This document shows, piece by piece, positions 34,505 to 55,030 of a stretch of DNA of 64,000 nt (the stretch's first letter is position 1; each line of letters starts with the position of its first letter). Source of the DNA: Podarcis melisellensis. Taxonomy: Eukaryota. The stretch is from the NCBI GenBank assembly GCA_964234715.1, contig OZ174281.1. The stretch is one strand, 5' to 3'. The notes under the pieces were generated by a model that worked only from the letters and a program-made list of their open reading frames with translations, did no database searches and was not told the origin of the DNA. The position numbers and the translations under genes were made by a program.

Positions 34505-36654
34505 TAGAATCATAGAATCATAGAGTTGGAAGAGACCACAAGGGCCATCGAGTCCAACCCCCTGCCAAGCAGGAAACCATCAGAGCACTCCTGACATATG
34601 GTTGTCAAGCCTCTGCTTAAAGACCTCCAAAGAAGGAGACTCCACCACACTCCTTGTCAGCAAATTCCACTGTCGAACAGCTCTTACTGTCAGGAAGTTC
34701 TTCCTAATGTTTAGGTGGAATCTTCTTTCTTGTAGTTTGGATCCATTGCTCCGTGTCCGCTTCTCTGAAGCAGCAGAAAACAACCTTTCTCCCTCCTCTA
34801 TATGACATACTTTTATATATTTGAACATGGTTATCATATCACCCCTTAACCTCCTCTTCTCCAGGCTAAACATGCCCAGCTCCCTTAGCCGTTCCTCATA
34901 AGGCATCGTTTCCAGGCCTTTGACCATTTTGGTTGCCCTCCTCTGGACACGTTCCAGTTTGTCAGTGTCCTTCTTGAACTGTGGTGCCCAGAACTGGACA
35001 CAGTACTCCAGGTGAGGTCTGACCAGAGCAGAATACAGTGGCACTATTACTTCCCTTGATCTAGATGCTATACTCCTATTGATGCAGCCCAGAATTGCAT
35101 TGGCTTTTTTAGCTGCCACGTCACACTGTTGGCTCATGTCAAGTTTGTGGTCAACCAAGACTCCTAGATCCTTTTCACATGTACTGCTCTCAAGTCAGGT
35201 GTCACCCATCTTGTATTTGTGCCTCTCATTTTTTTTGCCCAAATGCAATACTTTACATTTCTCCCTCTTAAAATTCATCTTGTTTGTTTTGGCCCAGTTC
35301 TCTAATCTGTCAAGGTCGTTTTGAAGTGTGATCCTGTCCTCTGGGATGTTAGCCACCCCTCCCAGTTTGGTGTCATCTGCAAATTTGATCAGGATGCCCT
35401 TGAGTCCATCATCCAAGTCGTTGATAAAGATGTTGAATAAGACCGGCCCAAGACAGAACCCTGTGGCACCCCACTAGTCACTCTTCTCCAGGATGAAGAG
35501 GAACCATTGATGAGCACCCTTTGGGTTCGGTCAGTCAGCCAGTTGCAAATCCACTGAGTGGTAGCATAGTCAAGACTGCATTTTACCAGCTTCTTTACAA
35601 GAATATCATGGGGCGCCTTGTCAAATGCCTTGCTGAAATCAAGGTAGGCTACATCCACTGCGTTCCCTTCATCTACCAGGCTTGTAATTCTGTCAAAAAA
35701 CGAGATCAGGTTAGTCTGACATGACTTATTTTTCAGAAATCCATGCTGACTATTGGTGATCACAGCATTCCTTTCTAGGTGCTCACAGACTGTTTGCTTA
35801 ATGATCTGCTCCAGAATCTTCCCTGGTATTGATGTCAGACTGACTGGGTGGTAATTATTTGGGTCCTCTCTTTTCCCCTTTTTGAAAATAGGGACAACAT
35901 TTGCCCTCCTCCAGTCTGCCGGGACTTCGCCTGTTCTCCAGGAATTCTCAAAGATGACTGCCAGTGGTTCTGAGATCACATCTGCCAGTTCTTTTAATAC
36001 TCTTGGATGCAGTTCATCTGGCCCTGGAGACTTGAATACATCTAAACTAGCCAAGTATTCTTGTACTATCTCCTTAGTTATTCTGGGCTGTGTTTCCTCT
36101 GCTGAATCATTTGCTCCAAATTCTTCAGGTTGGCCATTGTTTTCTTTATCGGAGAAGACTGAGGCAAAGAAGGCATTGAGGAGTTCAGCCCTTTCTGTGT
36201 CCCCTGTTTGCATTTCACCATCTTCTCCTCTGAGTGACTCCACTGTTTCTTTGTTCTTCCTTTTGCTACGAACATACCCATAAAAGCCTTTTTTGTTGCT
36301 TTTAACCTCTCTAGCAAGCCTGAGTTCATTCTGTGCTTTAGCTTTTCTAACTTTGTGTCTACACGTGCTGGCTATTTGTTTGAATTCCTCTTTGGTGGTT
36401 CCCCCCTTTTCCATTTTTTGTACACATCCTTTTTTAATCTTAACTCAGTTAAAAGTTCTTTAGATAGCCACCCTGGCTTCTTTAGGCACCTTCCATGTTT
36501 CCATCTCATTGGTATTGCCTGAAGTTGTACTTTTACTATCTCCCTCTTAACAAACTCCCAGCCATCATGAACTCCCTTTCCTTTTAGTATTACTGTCCAT
36601 GGGATCTCACCCAGCACTTCCCTAAGTTTTATGAAGTCGGCTTTCTTAAAGTTG
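34505..36654 (-). mobile_element. CR1 LINE, 5'-truncated, ORF2 broken by frameshifts and a stop
   Basis: ORF pieces [56 protein letters not shown]; 3' tail (GATTCTAT)n seen as tagaatcatagaatcatag. Confidence 0.95.

Positions 36655-49199: not shown

Positions 49200-49258
<59 letters not shown>
49200..49258. repeat. (TA)n microsatellite, left flank of the PLE
   Basis: Pure TA run. Confidence 0.98.
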
Positions 49259-49260
<2 letters not shown>

Positions 49261-49342
49261 TTTCGTAGATTTTCACGGGTACAGGAATGCAGGTTTTGGT
49301 GTCCTCGGGTGTCTTCCCGTGTAAAAGTTGGGGTGTCTAGGC

Positions 49343-49376
49343 GACGTTTCGACGAGGTCTCACTCGTCATCTTCAG
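49343..49376 (-). ncRNA. Minimal hammerhead ribozyme motif (PLE type), - strand arm
   Basis: Exact reverse complement of 51788-51821. Confidence 0.75.
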
Positions 49377-51069
49377 GCTGGTGCTTTCGGCTTCTTGTTA
49401 CTGGAACAGAGCAGGATCTCAGTGTTTGAGTTCCTATAAATACTGTTGAGGGGGTGTGGTGTATAGCCTCCAATGTTCTGGGCAGAGAGGAAGTTCCCAG
49501 GCTAGTGTGCCTTTTCTTCTTTTGTTCCTTAATTACTTGAGGGATATCTTGAGTGATTTCTTGAGTGATATCCTGAGTACCACTTAGGTGGGTCATTAGG
49601 TGTGGATTAGTTGCTAAAATCTTTGTGTCTTGACCTCTTGAACTTTGTGAAGAGTTTTTCTGAGAAGATGGCTGTACTGCACTTAGTTGTGCTCTGGCTT
49701 GGCTTCGTGTATAGGGGCGAGCTGTGGTTTTGTGGCCTGTGTCAGCCAGATCTGTGTAGGGATTGCAGGGGGGTGCAGCATCCGGAGGTGCCACCATGGT
49801 TTGGCTACTGGATGGTGTCTGTAATTTATCTGTGGAGAGGGTCTGGGTTTGGGTCTGGTGTGGTTGATTGGTGATAGCGTTCTGTGTGCCTCTGGATCTG
49901 GTGTCAGTTTTTGTGGGGAGGGCTAATTTCCAGATGTCTGGCAAGCGGGATGTGTCGTCACGCTTGTTCATGTTGTGAGGGTGTTTCTCTTTCTCGATGG
50001 CTTCCATGATTATTCTCTTGTGGTGATGTTCCATGTTAAAGAGCAATTTGGAATCTGCAAAATTAATTTCGTGTCCTGTTTCTTTCATGTGTTGGAAAAG
50101 AGAGGAAGTTTTTTCTTCTTTTTTGACGGCATTCTTGTGTTCTGCGATACGTGCATTTATTCGTCTGTTTGTTTGTCCAATGTACGTGGCTGGGCAGACT
50201 TTGCAGGGTATTTCATAGACCCCTTGGTTTTCCAACTGGATTTTATCCTTGGGGTTTCTGAGGATATTGGCTATTTTTTGGTTGGTGCAAAAGGCTGTTT
50301 TGATATTGTGTTTATGGAGGATTTTGCTAATTTTATCTGTAGTGCCCTTGATATAAGGAAGGAGGGCCATGCCATTGTTTTCTTCTGTGTCTTGGTTTTT
50401 GGGGGGTGTTTCTTTTTGGATTAGCTTCGTAACCCTGTTTTGCTGGTATCCATTGGCAATTAACACATTTGAGAGATTCTGTAACTCAGTTGTCAAGTGG
50501 TCTTTGTCAGCCAGGCGTTTGGTTCTGGAGATGAGAGTCTTGGCTACGGAGTTTATTTGTGCAGGGTGGTGGTGTGATTGTGCATGTAAGTAGCGGTTGG
50601 TGTGTGTTTTTTTCCGGTAGATAGTGTGTCCTAGGGAGCCATCAGGTTTTTTGTAGATTAGGACGTCAAGGAAGGGAAGTTGGTTGTTGGCTTCTATTTC
50701 CATAGTGAATTGTATTTTGGGGTGTAGGCTGTTGAGATGTGTGAGGAAGCTATCCAGTTTTTCCTTCCCGTGTGGCCAAATTACAAAGGTGTCGTCAACA
50801 TATCTGAGCCAAAGTTTGGGTTTGTGTTCTGACTTGTCTAAAGCATTGGTTTCAAAGTGTTCCATGTACAGGTTTGCGATGACCGGTGAGAGGGGTGATC
50901 CCATAGGTGCTCCTTCTATCTGTTTGTATCTTTGTCCATTGTGGATGAAGTACGTGTTGGTTAGGCAGTGGTTGGTCAGGTCCAAGATGTATTCGGGGGG
51001 ATTGTATTTGTTTTGAATGGCTGTCAAGGCTTCATTAATGGGCACTTGTGTGAAGAGAGATACAACATC
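49360..51069 (-). CDS. PLE ORF (partial RT + GIY-YIG endonuclease + low-complexity tail), 569 aa uninterrupted, no native start
   Basis: DVVSLFT, GAPMGSPLSPVIANLYM, RYVDDTF and LPFLDVLI (PLE RT motifs); GVYEIPCKVCPATYIGQT...RIAEH...EAIE (GIY-YIG). The first 40 aa of the listed ORF are antisense read-in from the inverted arm. Confidence 0.9.
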   Translation of the reverse strand, partial: DVVSLFTQVPINEALTAIQNKYNPPEYILDLTNHCLTNTYFIHNGQRYKQIEGAPMGSPLSPVIANLYMEHFETNALDKSEHKPKLWLRYVDDTFVIWPHGKEKLDSFLTHLNSLHPKIQFTMEIEANNQLPFLDVLIYKKPDGSLGHTIYRKKTHTNRYLHAQSHHHPAQINSVAKTLISRTKRLADKDHLTTELQNLSNVLIANGYQQNRVTKLIQKETPPKNQDTEENNGMALLPYIKGTTDKISKILHKHNIKTAFCTNQKIANILRNPKDKIQLENQGVYEIPCKVCPATYIGQTNRRINARIAEHKNAVKKEEKTSSLFQHMKETGHEINFADSKLLFNMEHHHKRIIMEAIEKEKHPHNMNKRDDTSRLPDIWKLALPTKTDTRSRGTQNAITNQPHQTQTQTLSTDKLQTPSSSQTMVAPPDAAPPCNPYTDLADTGHKTTARPYTRSQARAQLSAVQPSSQKNSSQSSRGQDTKILATNPHLMTHLSGTQDITQEITQDIPQVIKEQKKKRHTSLGTSSLPRTLEAIHHTPSTVFIGTQTLRSCSVPVTRSRKHQPEDDE

Positions 51070-51787
51070 CAACACATGAAAGAAACAGGACACGAAATTA
51101 ATTTTGCAGATTCCAAATTGCTCTTTAACATGGAACATCACCACAAGAGAATAATCATGGAAGCCATCGAGAAAGAGAAACACCCTCACAACATGAACAA
51201 GCGTGACGACACATCCCGCTTGCCAGACATCTGGAAATTAGCCCTCCCCACAAAAACTGACACCAGATCCAGAGGCACACAGAACGCTATCACCAATCAA
51301 CCACACCAGACCCAAACCCAGACCCTCTCCACAGATAAATTACAGACACCATCCAGTAGCCAAACCATGGTGGCACCTCCGGATGCTGCACCCCCCTGCA
51401 ATCCCTACACAGATCTGGCTGACACAGGCCACAAAACCACAGCTCGCCCCTATACACGAAGCCAAGCCAGAGCCCAACTAAGTGCAGTACAGCCATCTTC
51501 TCAGAAAAACTCTTCACAAAGTTCAAGAGGTCAAGACACAAAGATTTTAGCAACTAATCCACACCTAATGACCCACCTAAGTGGTACTCAGGATATCACT
51601 CAAGAAATCACTCAAGATATCCCTCAAGTAATTAAGGAACAAAAGAAGAAAAGGCACACTAGCCTGGGAACTTCCTCTCTGCCCAGAACATTGGAGGCTA
51701 TACACCACACCCCCTCAACAGTATTTATAGGAACTCAAACACTGAGATCCTGCTCTGTTCCAGTAACAAGAAGCCGAAAGCACCAGC

Positions 51788-51821
51788 CTGAAGATGACGA
51801 GTGAGACCTCGTCGAAACGTC
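51788..51821 (+). ncRNA. Minimal hammerhead ribozyme motif (PLE type), + strand arm
   Basis: CTGAAGA-T-GACGAG-tgagac-CTCGTC-GAAA-CG-TC: CUGANGA box, perfect 6-bp stem II, GAAA box, palindromic ACGT in place of stem III, UC cleavage site. Confidence 0.75.
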
Positions 51822-51868
51822 GCCTAGACACCCCAACTTTTACACGGGAAGACACCCGAGGACACCAA

Positions 51869-51871
<3 letters not shown>

Positions 51872-51921
<50 letters not shown>
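51872..51921. repeat. (TA)n microsatellite, right flank of the PLE
   Basis: Pure AT run. Confidence 0.98.
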
Positions 51922-52900: not shown

Positions 52901-55030
52901 GTAAGTAGAAAACCAACAAAATAGAACAACGGGAGGTTTTATTTATACCAGGGATTCAGAATCGTCCTTCCAGATGTTGCTGGACTCCAACTCCCAACAG
53001 CCCTAGCCAGCATATGGACCATTGTCGTGGAAGAAGGGAGCTGCAGTCCAGCAACATCTGGAGGGCCACAGGTTCACTATCCCTGCTTTTATATTGCGGT
53101 ACATGCCTGGAAGCAGGCACTGTTGTCCTTTGTCCAGGTGAACATTCCTTTGTAGCAGTGCTCTGTCCTCTTCCGCCTGCCCTGCCCAGATCTGTAATTT
53201 GTGGGTGCCTTGTTGAGATCAAGAGAGTCTAGTGGGAGCTGAGTAGAAAGACTGGCAAATGAACACAGTATTCCAGCTGTGAATCAACTAGTCCCCGCTG
53301 CCAACTGCTTGCATTCTGGACCTTACATTGATGCTTCTTACTGTAACATGCAGTATCAAAGTGTTTCTCCTCTGGCACCACGATCCTGAATAGGTGATAC
53401 TCCCTAAAGTTACAACAGTTAATTCTGACGTCCTCCAGTCCATTGGATTTGTAAGCCTCATAGGACACTGGCTTGATGGTTTCTCCTCTTCCCTTCCCTG
53501 CATTATTTTTGTTGACATGTGATCCATTGTAATCCCATATTGCTTTCTATCATTCTTCTGCCCAGCTGCTTATAGCCTCTTTGTTTGCCATTTCTCCCTG
53601 CCTTGCATTTCCCCAACACAAATGGCTCCTATAAGTAAATTATGTTCTAATTTTTATTAAAATGATTGTTCCACCATTTAAATGATTGCCATCAGAGCAT
53701 AACCCTCCTTTTCCATATCAAAGTGTTTTACCTAAGGCCACACGTTCCAAATTTTCCATTTCCTGCAAATGCACGCTGGCTGTACAAAGCCTCTGCTTAC
53801 TGACAGTGTGAATTAGGCACCGATAAGGTACTGCCCGCTTCTTCCCTCTCTTCACCAAGTGAATCACAAAAGCCTCTTACTGTCAACCTTTGGCATGTCT
53901 TGGAGGTTTTCTGTGGAGTCTGTGGTCTCCTGCTGAGCTGATAAAAAATGAAAGTAGCTGAATCAATTACATTGCTTTCTGCCAATGAATATTTATTAAA
54001 TTCTATCAAGGAACAGCTAGCGGTGAAAGGCATCATGCTGGTAGCAATTTGAACAAGAGACTCTTAACAGAACATGCTGCGCATAAAATACTCCCAAAAT
54101 TTGATTTCATGACAATACGGTTGATCTAGAATAATTATAAAGGTGGCTTGTTCTCTGTGGCGCTGTAGAAAATTGGCTGAAGTAGCACAAGAAATCCAAG
54201 AATCTTATTAGTCACTCTATAAACCAGATATTGCAGGCAACTGGATTAGGTGTGTAGGTATTCACAGAGCTTCATGCAATGCCAGTGATCTTTCGCCTAT
54301 AATGACTTACTATTCCCAACAAAATTAAACCAAGTAAATAGTTCAAGTGAATTAGAAAGTGCATGATTTTTAAAATTAAAAATGCAACAAAACAGTTTAA
54401 TATAAAGGATTTTCCAGTTTTCATAGCAATACCGAAATGCATATTTAGATGAACATAATTCCGTGTGTTTCAAATTTGTATTGTTTCAAAGTACTTTTTA
54501 AAATCACAGCTATGTAATTTTGACATGTGTTACACTTAACTCCTGGGAAGGTGCCGTAGCTTCCACTAGCATAACAATTTAGTTGAATACGGATGAAAGA
54601 TTATAAGGAATCAATATCATTGTCTGGAGCATTTTCCCATTTCACTGTAGTTCTCTAGATGAGTCCATATATTATCCCAGAAGCTAATAAAATGTTGAAG
54701 CTGAATAATGAAAGCATTAATCCTGAATTTCTCTTGGAATATACAGGTGTGCCTCCAATGGCTTTTCTGGAGTGTCTGATAGCAGTCGATTCTTTTGCCC
54801 TAACTTTATATACCAGGATGGTTGCAGGCAGAAATCTCTTTGCAGTTTGCATTAAAATTTCACTGCATTGGCCAAACATTGATGAAGTCTTGATGAAGCT
54901 ATGTAGGCTTTTCTTGGAACAGACTCATTAATGGTCTGTCACTTGAGTAGCAGCCTCCTTGTTTATTATGTGTTGAATGTCTTGTCTTTTTCACCCTGTG
55001 ATTTGGAATGTCATAGGACCAAGTGCCAAA

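Follow-up and report, generated by a model that had tools for sequence, protein, structure and literature searches.

A minimal hammerhead motif of a Penelope-like element in a 5'-truncated, head-to-head insertion in Podarcis melisellensis

A minimal type I hammerhead motif is present at 51788-51821 (+ strand) of the 64,000-nt stretch of Podarcis melisellensis DNA that was analysed (contig OZ174281.1, the window), and an identical motif lies at 49343-49376 on the - strand. It is probably the conserved minimal hammerhead of a Penelope-like element (PLE) of lacertid-type lizards, sitting passively in a 5'-truncated head-to-head insertion and not expected to cleave. That the motif is a genuine but ordinary copy of a known class of PLE ribozyme, in a dead insertion, is well supported. 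The sequence, the identity of the element, conservation with covariation, the overlaps with start and stop codons and a hairpin prediction carry this reading; catalysis and the mechanism of insertion are inferred.

The motif was read directly as CTGAAGA-T-GACGAG(TGAGAC)CTCGTC-GAAACGTC at 51788-51821, with the reverse complement at 49343-49376, so that its placement on both strands in the initial annotation is confirmed. Positions C3-A9 occupy 51788-51794 and are followed by a single unpaired nucleotide between A9 and G10.1, the extra U at 51795. Helix II is formed by 51796-51801 with 51808-51813 (6 bp, GACGAG/CUCGUC) and closes loop II at 51802-51807. The 3' part of the core, G12-A14 (51814-51816), is followed by A15.1-C-G-U16.1 (51817-51820), where helix III/loop 3 is reduced to the palindrome ACGU, and by C17 (51821), after which the cut is predicted. 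Both parts of the core, C3-U4-G5-A6-N7-G8-A9 and G12-A13-A14, are present as CUGAAGA and GAA, and the nucleotide at the cleavage site (H17, not G) is C51821. Helix I has 2 bp (GC/GC), as in the relative L086; the other relatives have 3-5 bp. The extra U, the ACGT helix III and a helix I of about two pairs had all been pointed out before and were all found. A loose pattern, CTGANGA-N(10-40)-GAAACGTC, matched the window twice against 0.01 matches expected from shuffled sequence, and the matches were solely 51788-51821 and 49343-49376. The two motifs are identical because both sit in one 804-nt perfect inverted repeat, and they are therefore not independent occurrences.

The arms of this repeat, at 49293-50096 and 51068-51871, are 100% identical. 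The insertion is a 5'-truncated Penelope-like element with reverse transcriptase (RT) and GIY-YIG domains, next to which its own 3' end is repeated in inverted orientation. A (TA)n microsatellite, the target of the insertion, flanks it at 49201-49260 on the left and 51872-51921 on the right. The main copy (49293-51067, - strand) comprises a partial RT, the GIY-YIG endonuclease, a tail and the hammerhead; its C-terminal tail is open for ~185 codons after the endonuclease, and 50 nt remain past the cut site. The second copy, also 5'-truncated, consists of the last 804 nt of the element (51068-51871, + strand) and meets the main copy head-to-head at 51067/51068. A 32-nt 3' extension ('tail') at 49261-49292 (- strand) is present on one of the two copies only. 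PLEs typically show inverted truncated copies, a one-sided tail of 30-40 bp and microsatellite targets (PMC8557442), and this insertion has all of these as well as a 5' truncation. Related copies in L001 and L084 likewise end in (TA)n, at slightly different points. The 804-nt perfect inverted repeat could in principle be an assembly artefact; its structure is nonetheless typical of PLEs. RNA reads have loose ends at 51068/51069, other copies continuing past that point, and no read was seen across the 51067/51068 junction.

The open reading frame (ORF) of the main copy was called at 49360-51189 (- strand, 609 aa). Its PLE-derived part is 49360-51066 (568 aa plus stop), the ~40 N-terminal residues being spurious and read from the inverted arm. 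Domain searches of this ORF gave PF00078 (RVT_1) at 8e-12 and PF01541 (GIY-YIG) at 20.3 bits, just below the cut-off of the latter, and the GIY-YIG region aligns with PLE endonucleases over 22 invariant columns. The best protein match was a Podarcis muralis protein at 95% identity, followed by ~1,450 PLE proteins from lizards, snakes, lamprey and many insects. The window comes with neither gene annotation nor soft-masking; when its ten longest other ORFs were searched with Pfam, the sole match was an RT fragment (RVT_1, 2e-16) in a 341-aa ORF at 35389-36414 (- strand).

Judging by stop codons, the stretch from the endonuclease to the motif (the tail) appears to be truly coding: there are none in the frame of the ORF against 9-10 in the other frames, in both the window copy and L001. 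Values of dN/dS between these two copies were ~1 in the endonuclease part and ~1 in the tail, and are uninformative because dead copies diverge neutrally; the stop counts were used instead. PYTRSQ and PVTRSRK occur in the tail of the window ORF, the latter immediately before the hammerhead, and a short basic (I/V)TRSQ- or LRPR-like motif lies near the end of the variable post-endonuclease tail of many relatives (P0003-P0028 and others).

The nearest characterised relative of the window element is PAc, a Poseidon Penelope-like element of Anolis carolinensis whose hammerhead has been validated experimentally (Mob DNA 2024, PMC11167929), and the element is of the canonical C-terminal endonuclease type. 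It appears to be Poseidon-like, an assignment made by similarity to PAc (47% identity) and not by a tree. Cleavage by the PAc hammerhead requires the protein of the element, and insertion in vitro does not depend on the hammerhead; C3G/G8C mutants show the classic loss and partial rescue of cleavage (PMC11167929). The PAc protein cleaves AT-rich DNA and extends both strands, and its reverse transcription has an internal start in AC-rich sequence, which lies in the first ~170-235 nt of the ORF of the next unit (PMC11167929).

The window element shares with PAc a type I minimal hammerhead in which A9-U-G10.1 is the start codon of an ORF, a 6-bp helix II followed by GAAACGUC, and a cut 25 nt after the start codon (26 nt in PAc). 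In both elements, insertions end in AC-rich sequence 50-110 nt past the motif and at AT-rich targets, with both strands extended to give inverted copies. The two 3' ends of the insertion lie 78 and 110 nt past the ATG of the motif in AC-rich sequence, which fits the PAc scheme. A stem-loop can be formed in this AC-rich region downstream of the motif, with an energy not better than that of shuffled sequences (z -0.91). The two elements differ in protein sequence (~47% identity), in helix I (GC/GC, 2 bp, in the window; AGG/CCU, 3 bp, in PAc) and at N7 (A in the window, G in PAc). They differ also in the upstream ORF, which runs open for ~185 codons past the endonuclease into the motif in the window, whereas that of PAc stops ~120 nt before it.

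By analogy with PAc, the motif of active tandem master copies would lie where two units meet. The upstream ORF would end in or just before it, and the next ORF would start at the AUG made of A9, the extra U and G10.1. Within such a tandem the motif would act as a weak self-cleaving site, assisted by dimer formation or by protein. Reverse transcription would begin within the next unit, 50-82 nt past the cut site, on an AT-rich target, with extension of both DNA strands. An internal start combined with two-strand extension would leave the motif near the 3' end of each insertion, and would give many insertions an inverted second copy. The motif in the window would then be a passive passenger of a 5'-truncated head-to-head insertion.

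All of the seemingly odd features that the initial annotation had pointed out are present in the window and are family traits, since they are listed for minimal hammerheads (min-HHRs) of PLEs in PMC4209133. Such min-HHRs have a standard core, a long helix II, a short helix I, an unpaired nucleotide that separates position 9 from 10.1, a G10.1-C11.1 pair and a helix III/loop 3 whose palindrome points to dimeric action (PMC4209133). Their activity in vitro is low, and they are found in fish, amphibians, coelacanth, turtle and snakes (Cervera & de la Pena 2014, PMC4209133). Lunse et al., as cited in PMC6765202, have shown cleavage of a PLE min-HHR as a dimer. In agreement with the class, the window motif has CUGANGA...GAAA, the unpaired 9/10.1 nucleotide, G10.1-C11.1, a long helix II and ACGU; it lies in a terminal repeat, and two motifs on opposite strands are frequent in the class. 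A helix I of ~4-5 bp is expected of PLE min-HHRs, and that of the window, 2 bp, is at the weak extreme; a Drosophila virilis Penelope variant also has a helix I of 2 bp (PMC4209133). The overlap of the window motif with ORF stop and start is absent from the account of min-HHRs in PMC4209133.

Relatives were collected by protein homology and not by the motif. They comprised contigs L001-L003 and L084-L088, whose encoded proteins have 40-95% identity (PAc is L085), and 80 metagenome loci found using an endonuclease-region alignment. In L002, L003, L084-L088 and many of the 80 metagenome loci the motif is again present at the homologous position, right after the ORF or at its start. Helix II is GACGAG/CUCGUC in the window, GGCAGA/UCUGCC in L002, GGCAAA/UUUGCC in L086, GUCUGG/CCAGAC in L087, GCCUGC/GUGGGC in PAc and GUGAACU/GGUUCAC in an insect clade. 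The window motif adds a lacertid-lizard family to the known PLEs with minimal hammerheads.

Twenty-one distinct motifs, about two thirds of them from one insect-associated metagenome clade, were aligned (alignment A2). Motifs were filtered for the core and at least four of the five outer helix II pairs; helix I, C3/G8 and pair types were left unselected. Helix II was paired at 93.5%, a value inflated by the filter on the outer pairs, and two-sided changes were present in 6/6 pairs; the first pair (G10.1-C11.1) was G-C in 20/21 motifs. Core columns were invariant or nearly so. The single unpaired nucleotide after A9 was present in 21/21 motifs as U or A, A15.1-U16.1 was A-U in 21/21, the central pair was CG in 12/21 and UG in 3/21, and position 17 in the relatives was C or U. 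Covariation is present in helix I too, at its inner three pairs (GUUC/GAAC, GUCU/AGAC, GAG/CUC, AGG/CCU, GGUUG/CAACC). U3-A8 takes the place of C3-G8 as the core pair in L084 and L087, a covariation reported for Schistosoma PLEs (Cercyon elements; PMC4209133). In these two contigs the core reads UUGAAAA instead of CUGAAGA, at 109-158 and 3020-3069 of L084 and at 112-161 of L087. The covariation score was 0.519 against 0.179 for shuffled alignments, none of 500 of which reached it, and was at most 0.13 when the partners were slid. The check on stem II covariation that had been proposed thus found two-sided changes at every pair together with a conserved core.

A covariance model (R1) was built from 20 relatives with the window family left out. 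Both window sites were detected with 38.8 bits (E 3e-8), and the next match scored 13.2 bits. Model R1 also detected motifs on which it was not trained, at the expected position, in many loci. It often detected a further inverted motif upstream of the ORF (for example in the metagenome loci L013, L022, L035, L037, L043, L053, L072 and L080), which indicates that two motifs on opposite strands, the head-to-head layout, are common in the group. The earlier assignment of the motif to the Penelope-like minimal type I class is thus supported by conservation, covariation and the covariance model.

The motif overlaps coding sequence at two points. An ORF on the + strand (50968-51804) ends in HQPEDDE and reads through the core to a TGA stop at 51802-51804, the first three bases of loop II, as had been noted at the outset. 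The stop of the upstream ORF falls in loop II in the window, L001 and L086 (SPEDGK and stop), and is U4-G5-A6 of the core in L002 and L003; the PAc ORF stops ~120 nt earlier. At L002 2447-2456 and L003 2233-2242 the stop U4-G5-A6 is followed 2 nt later by the next ATG (UGAAGAUG), a junction inside the ribozyme that resembles termination and restart.

The second overlap is an ATG formed by A9, the extra U and G10.1 (51794-51796, + strand), the counterpart by homology of the codon at which the ORFs of PAc and other relatives begin. Residues 1-10 of the ORF that opens there (MTSETSSKRR in the window) are encoded by helix II, GAAA and the cut site, and the frame leads into the conserved N-terminal region of the element ORF. 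The window cut site is 25 nt past this ATG, and the frame ends after 26 codons at the end of the insertion. The N-terminal peptides begin MTSETSSKRRLDTPTFTREDTR in the window, MADEIRPKRRLNKK in L003, MAPKGEPKRRVK in L084 (994 aa), MPAIDVGETSG in PAc (836 aa) and MPLVAECETS in L088 (835 aa). The overlap of protein and ribozyme that had been claimed is therefore real; the stop in loop II is a lineage variant, and the ORF start is the more widely conserved overlap. The start-codon overlap at helix II is already published for PAc (PMC11167929). This start-codon-in-ribozyme layout, published for one Anolis element, is common to relatives at 40-60% protein identity. That the stop of the previous ORF also lies inside the ribozyme in several relatives (in a shifted frame in the window) is mildly new, and this close packing of stop, ribozyme and start at one junction adds modestly, and testably, to ideas of how PLEs may couple RNA processing and translation.

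The best surviving alternative, which we nevertheless regard as unlikely, is that the motif is kept for non-catalytic reasons such as translation-start context, protein binding or recognition of the RT template, and that the lizard family no longer cleaves anywhere. Hammerhead mutants of PAc leave insertion in vitro unaffected (PMC11167929), Naiad PLEs thrive without hammerheads (PMC8557442), and helix I is down to 2 bp in the window lineage and in L086. RNA-seq shows no ends at the hammerhead cut site in Anolis (PMC11167929), nor were any found here. When two 50-nt motifs were cofolded, the ACGU/ACGU helix was absent from the minimum free energy (MFE) structure; tertiary contacts lie outside the thermodynamic model, so this result was not counted against the dimer. 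Against this reading, exactly the helices of the hammerhead are kept by covariation. The residues that helix II encodes vary freely (MTSETSSKRR, MADVTLPKRR, MAPKGEPKRR, MPAIDVGETS) with pairing kept, and the insect clade retains the motif with an extra A and so without an AUG; the conserved object is therefore the RNA structure and not the peptide. The change of the core pair from C3-G8 to U3-A8 argues in the same direction, as do the cleavage of PAc and its loss and partial rescue in the C3G/G8C mutants (PMC11167929).

A more speculative extension of the conserved PLE hammerhead, which we consider improbable, is that the hammerhead doubles as a translational junction in the PLE clade, that the extra nucleotide is partly selected as part of the start codon, and that cleavage separates the AUG from its ORF. 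If so, the upstream ORF would stop inside the ribozyme in tandem transcripts, and the next ORF would start 2 nt later or 11 nt earlier. Cleavage would then switch the RNA between messenger and template or circle, or permit termination and reinitiation on multimers.

The initial annotation had also proposed that the + strand copy is transcribed in the pre-mRNA of a putative host gene (ZNF704, intron 6, sense strand), where it could cleave itself and so cut the intron of every transcript from this allele. We consider this very unlikely. In its favour, the catalytic core is intact, the family has a validated member, and the family is transcribed from both strands. Pairing with the upstream arm, however, is predicted to lock the motif into a perfect duplex of 804 bp: in the MFE fold of 49261-51871, 803 of the 804 arm positions are paired, every base of the motif included. 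Predicted energies were -107.7 kcal/mol for a 50-nt duplex against -5.2 for the hammerhead-like local fold. A pattern scan of the window found one motif per strand, and hence no nearby second sense copy for the dimer that PLE min-HHRs need. Helix I is 2 bp, and PAc does not cleave without its protein.

RNA evidence was taken from four raw-read RNA runs carrying the same species label. Reads of the family, from both strands, cross the cut site at a depth of 30-70, and no pile-up of read ends was present at 51821/51822 in the four runs; this absence is weak on its own, because standard libraries detect 5'-OH and cyclic-phosphate ends poorly. Cleavage at the window locus is judged unlikely on the combination of the predicted duplex, the missing tandem partner, the 2-bp helix I, the requirement of PAc for its protein and the absence of RNA ends.

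For the host genome, the 804-bp perfect inverted repeat is more likely to matter as a source of double-stranded RNA than as a ribozyme. Mismatches in reads over 50400-51871 were A>G or T>C at 53 places and G>A or C>T at 9 in run X23, and at 55 and 12 places, respectively, in run X24. Strand-specific T>C changes were present at 51809 and 51840, and run X24 contained 11 reads with a loose end at 51842 whose consensus has C at every T covered. This large excess of A>G and T>C looks like A-to-I hyper-editing of double-stranded RNA from inverted PLE copies. Loose ends were also present before 51785 and 51787 (7-14 reads per bulk run), where unrelated upstream sequence is joined at the start of the hammerhead core. 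The reads joining at 51785-51788 may stem from a further subfamily or a non-autonomous derivative, or from RNA that was processed or spliced.

Two further computations bear on whether the motif is a hammerhead at all. Rfam cmscan, run on 7 kb and on 121 nt with E up to 10, gave no hammerhead match; the experimentally validated PAc motif was missed as well, so this negative carries no weight. The window motif shares the catalytic core and type I topology of Rfam Hammerhead_1 (RF00163), but models of that type are built for a true helix III and for a helix I of greater length. Of the Infernal searches that had been suggested, the Hammerhead_1 part returned nothing, whereas the model of PLE relatives matched both sites. 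The MFE fold of a 71-nt region formed helix II alone and was not better than shuffled sequences (z -0.99), which is uninformative because the motif needs a dimer or a protein. A chance resemblance to the hammerhead core inside a coding tail, for which the blank Rfam models and the unremarkable fold might be cited, has a negligible probability and is refuted by the 0.01 pattern matches expected per window, by the recurrence of the motif, with compensatory changes, at the corresponding place in relatives whose proteins are 40-60% identical, and by the match to the independent covariance model (E 3e-8).

Two minor observations were made in the course of the searches. One relative, P0100, is a PLE RT/endonuclease whose NCBI entry, on a 2.6-kb contig, calls it a hypothetical protein (partial) from Escherichia coli; it is most likely animal DNA contaminating a bacterial assembly. 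In the window itself, an 86-nt near-perfect hairpin lies at 52973-53058, ~1.1 kb downstream of the insertion. It matched the mir-5408 model weakly (36 bits, E 0.0012, far under the gathering score) and is probably a small inverted-repeat element.
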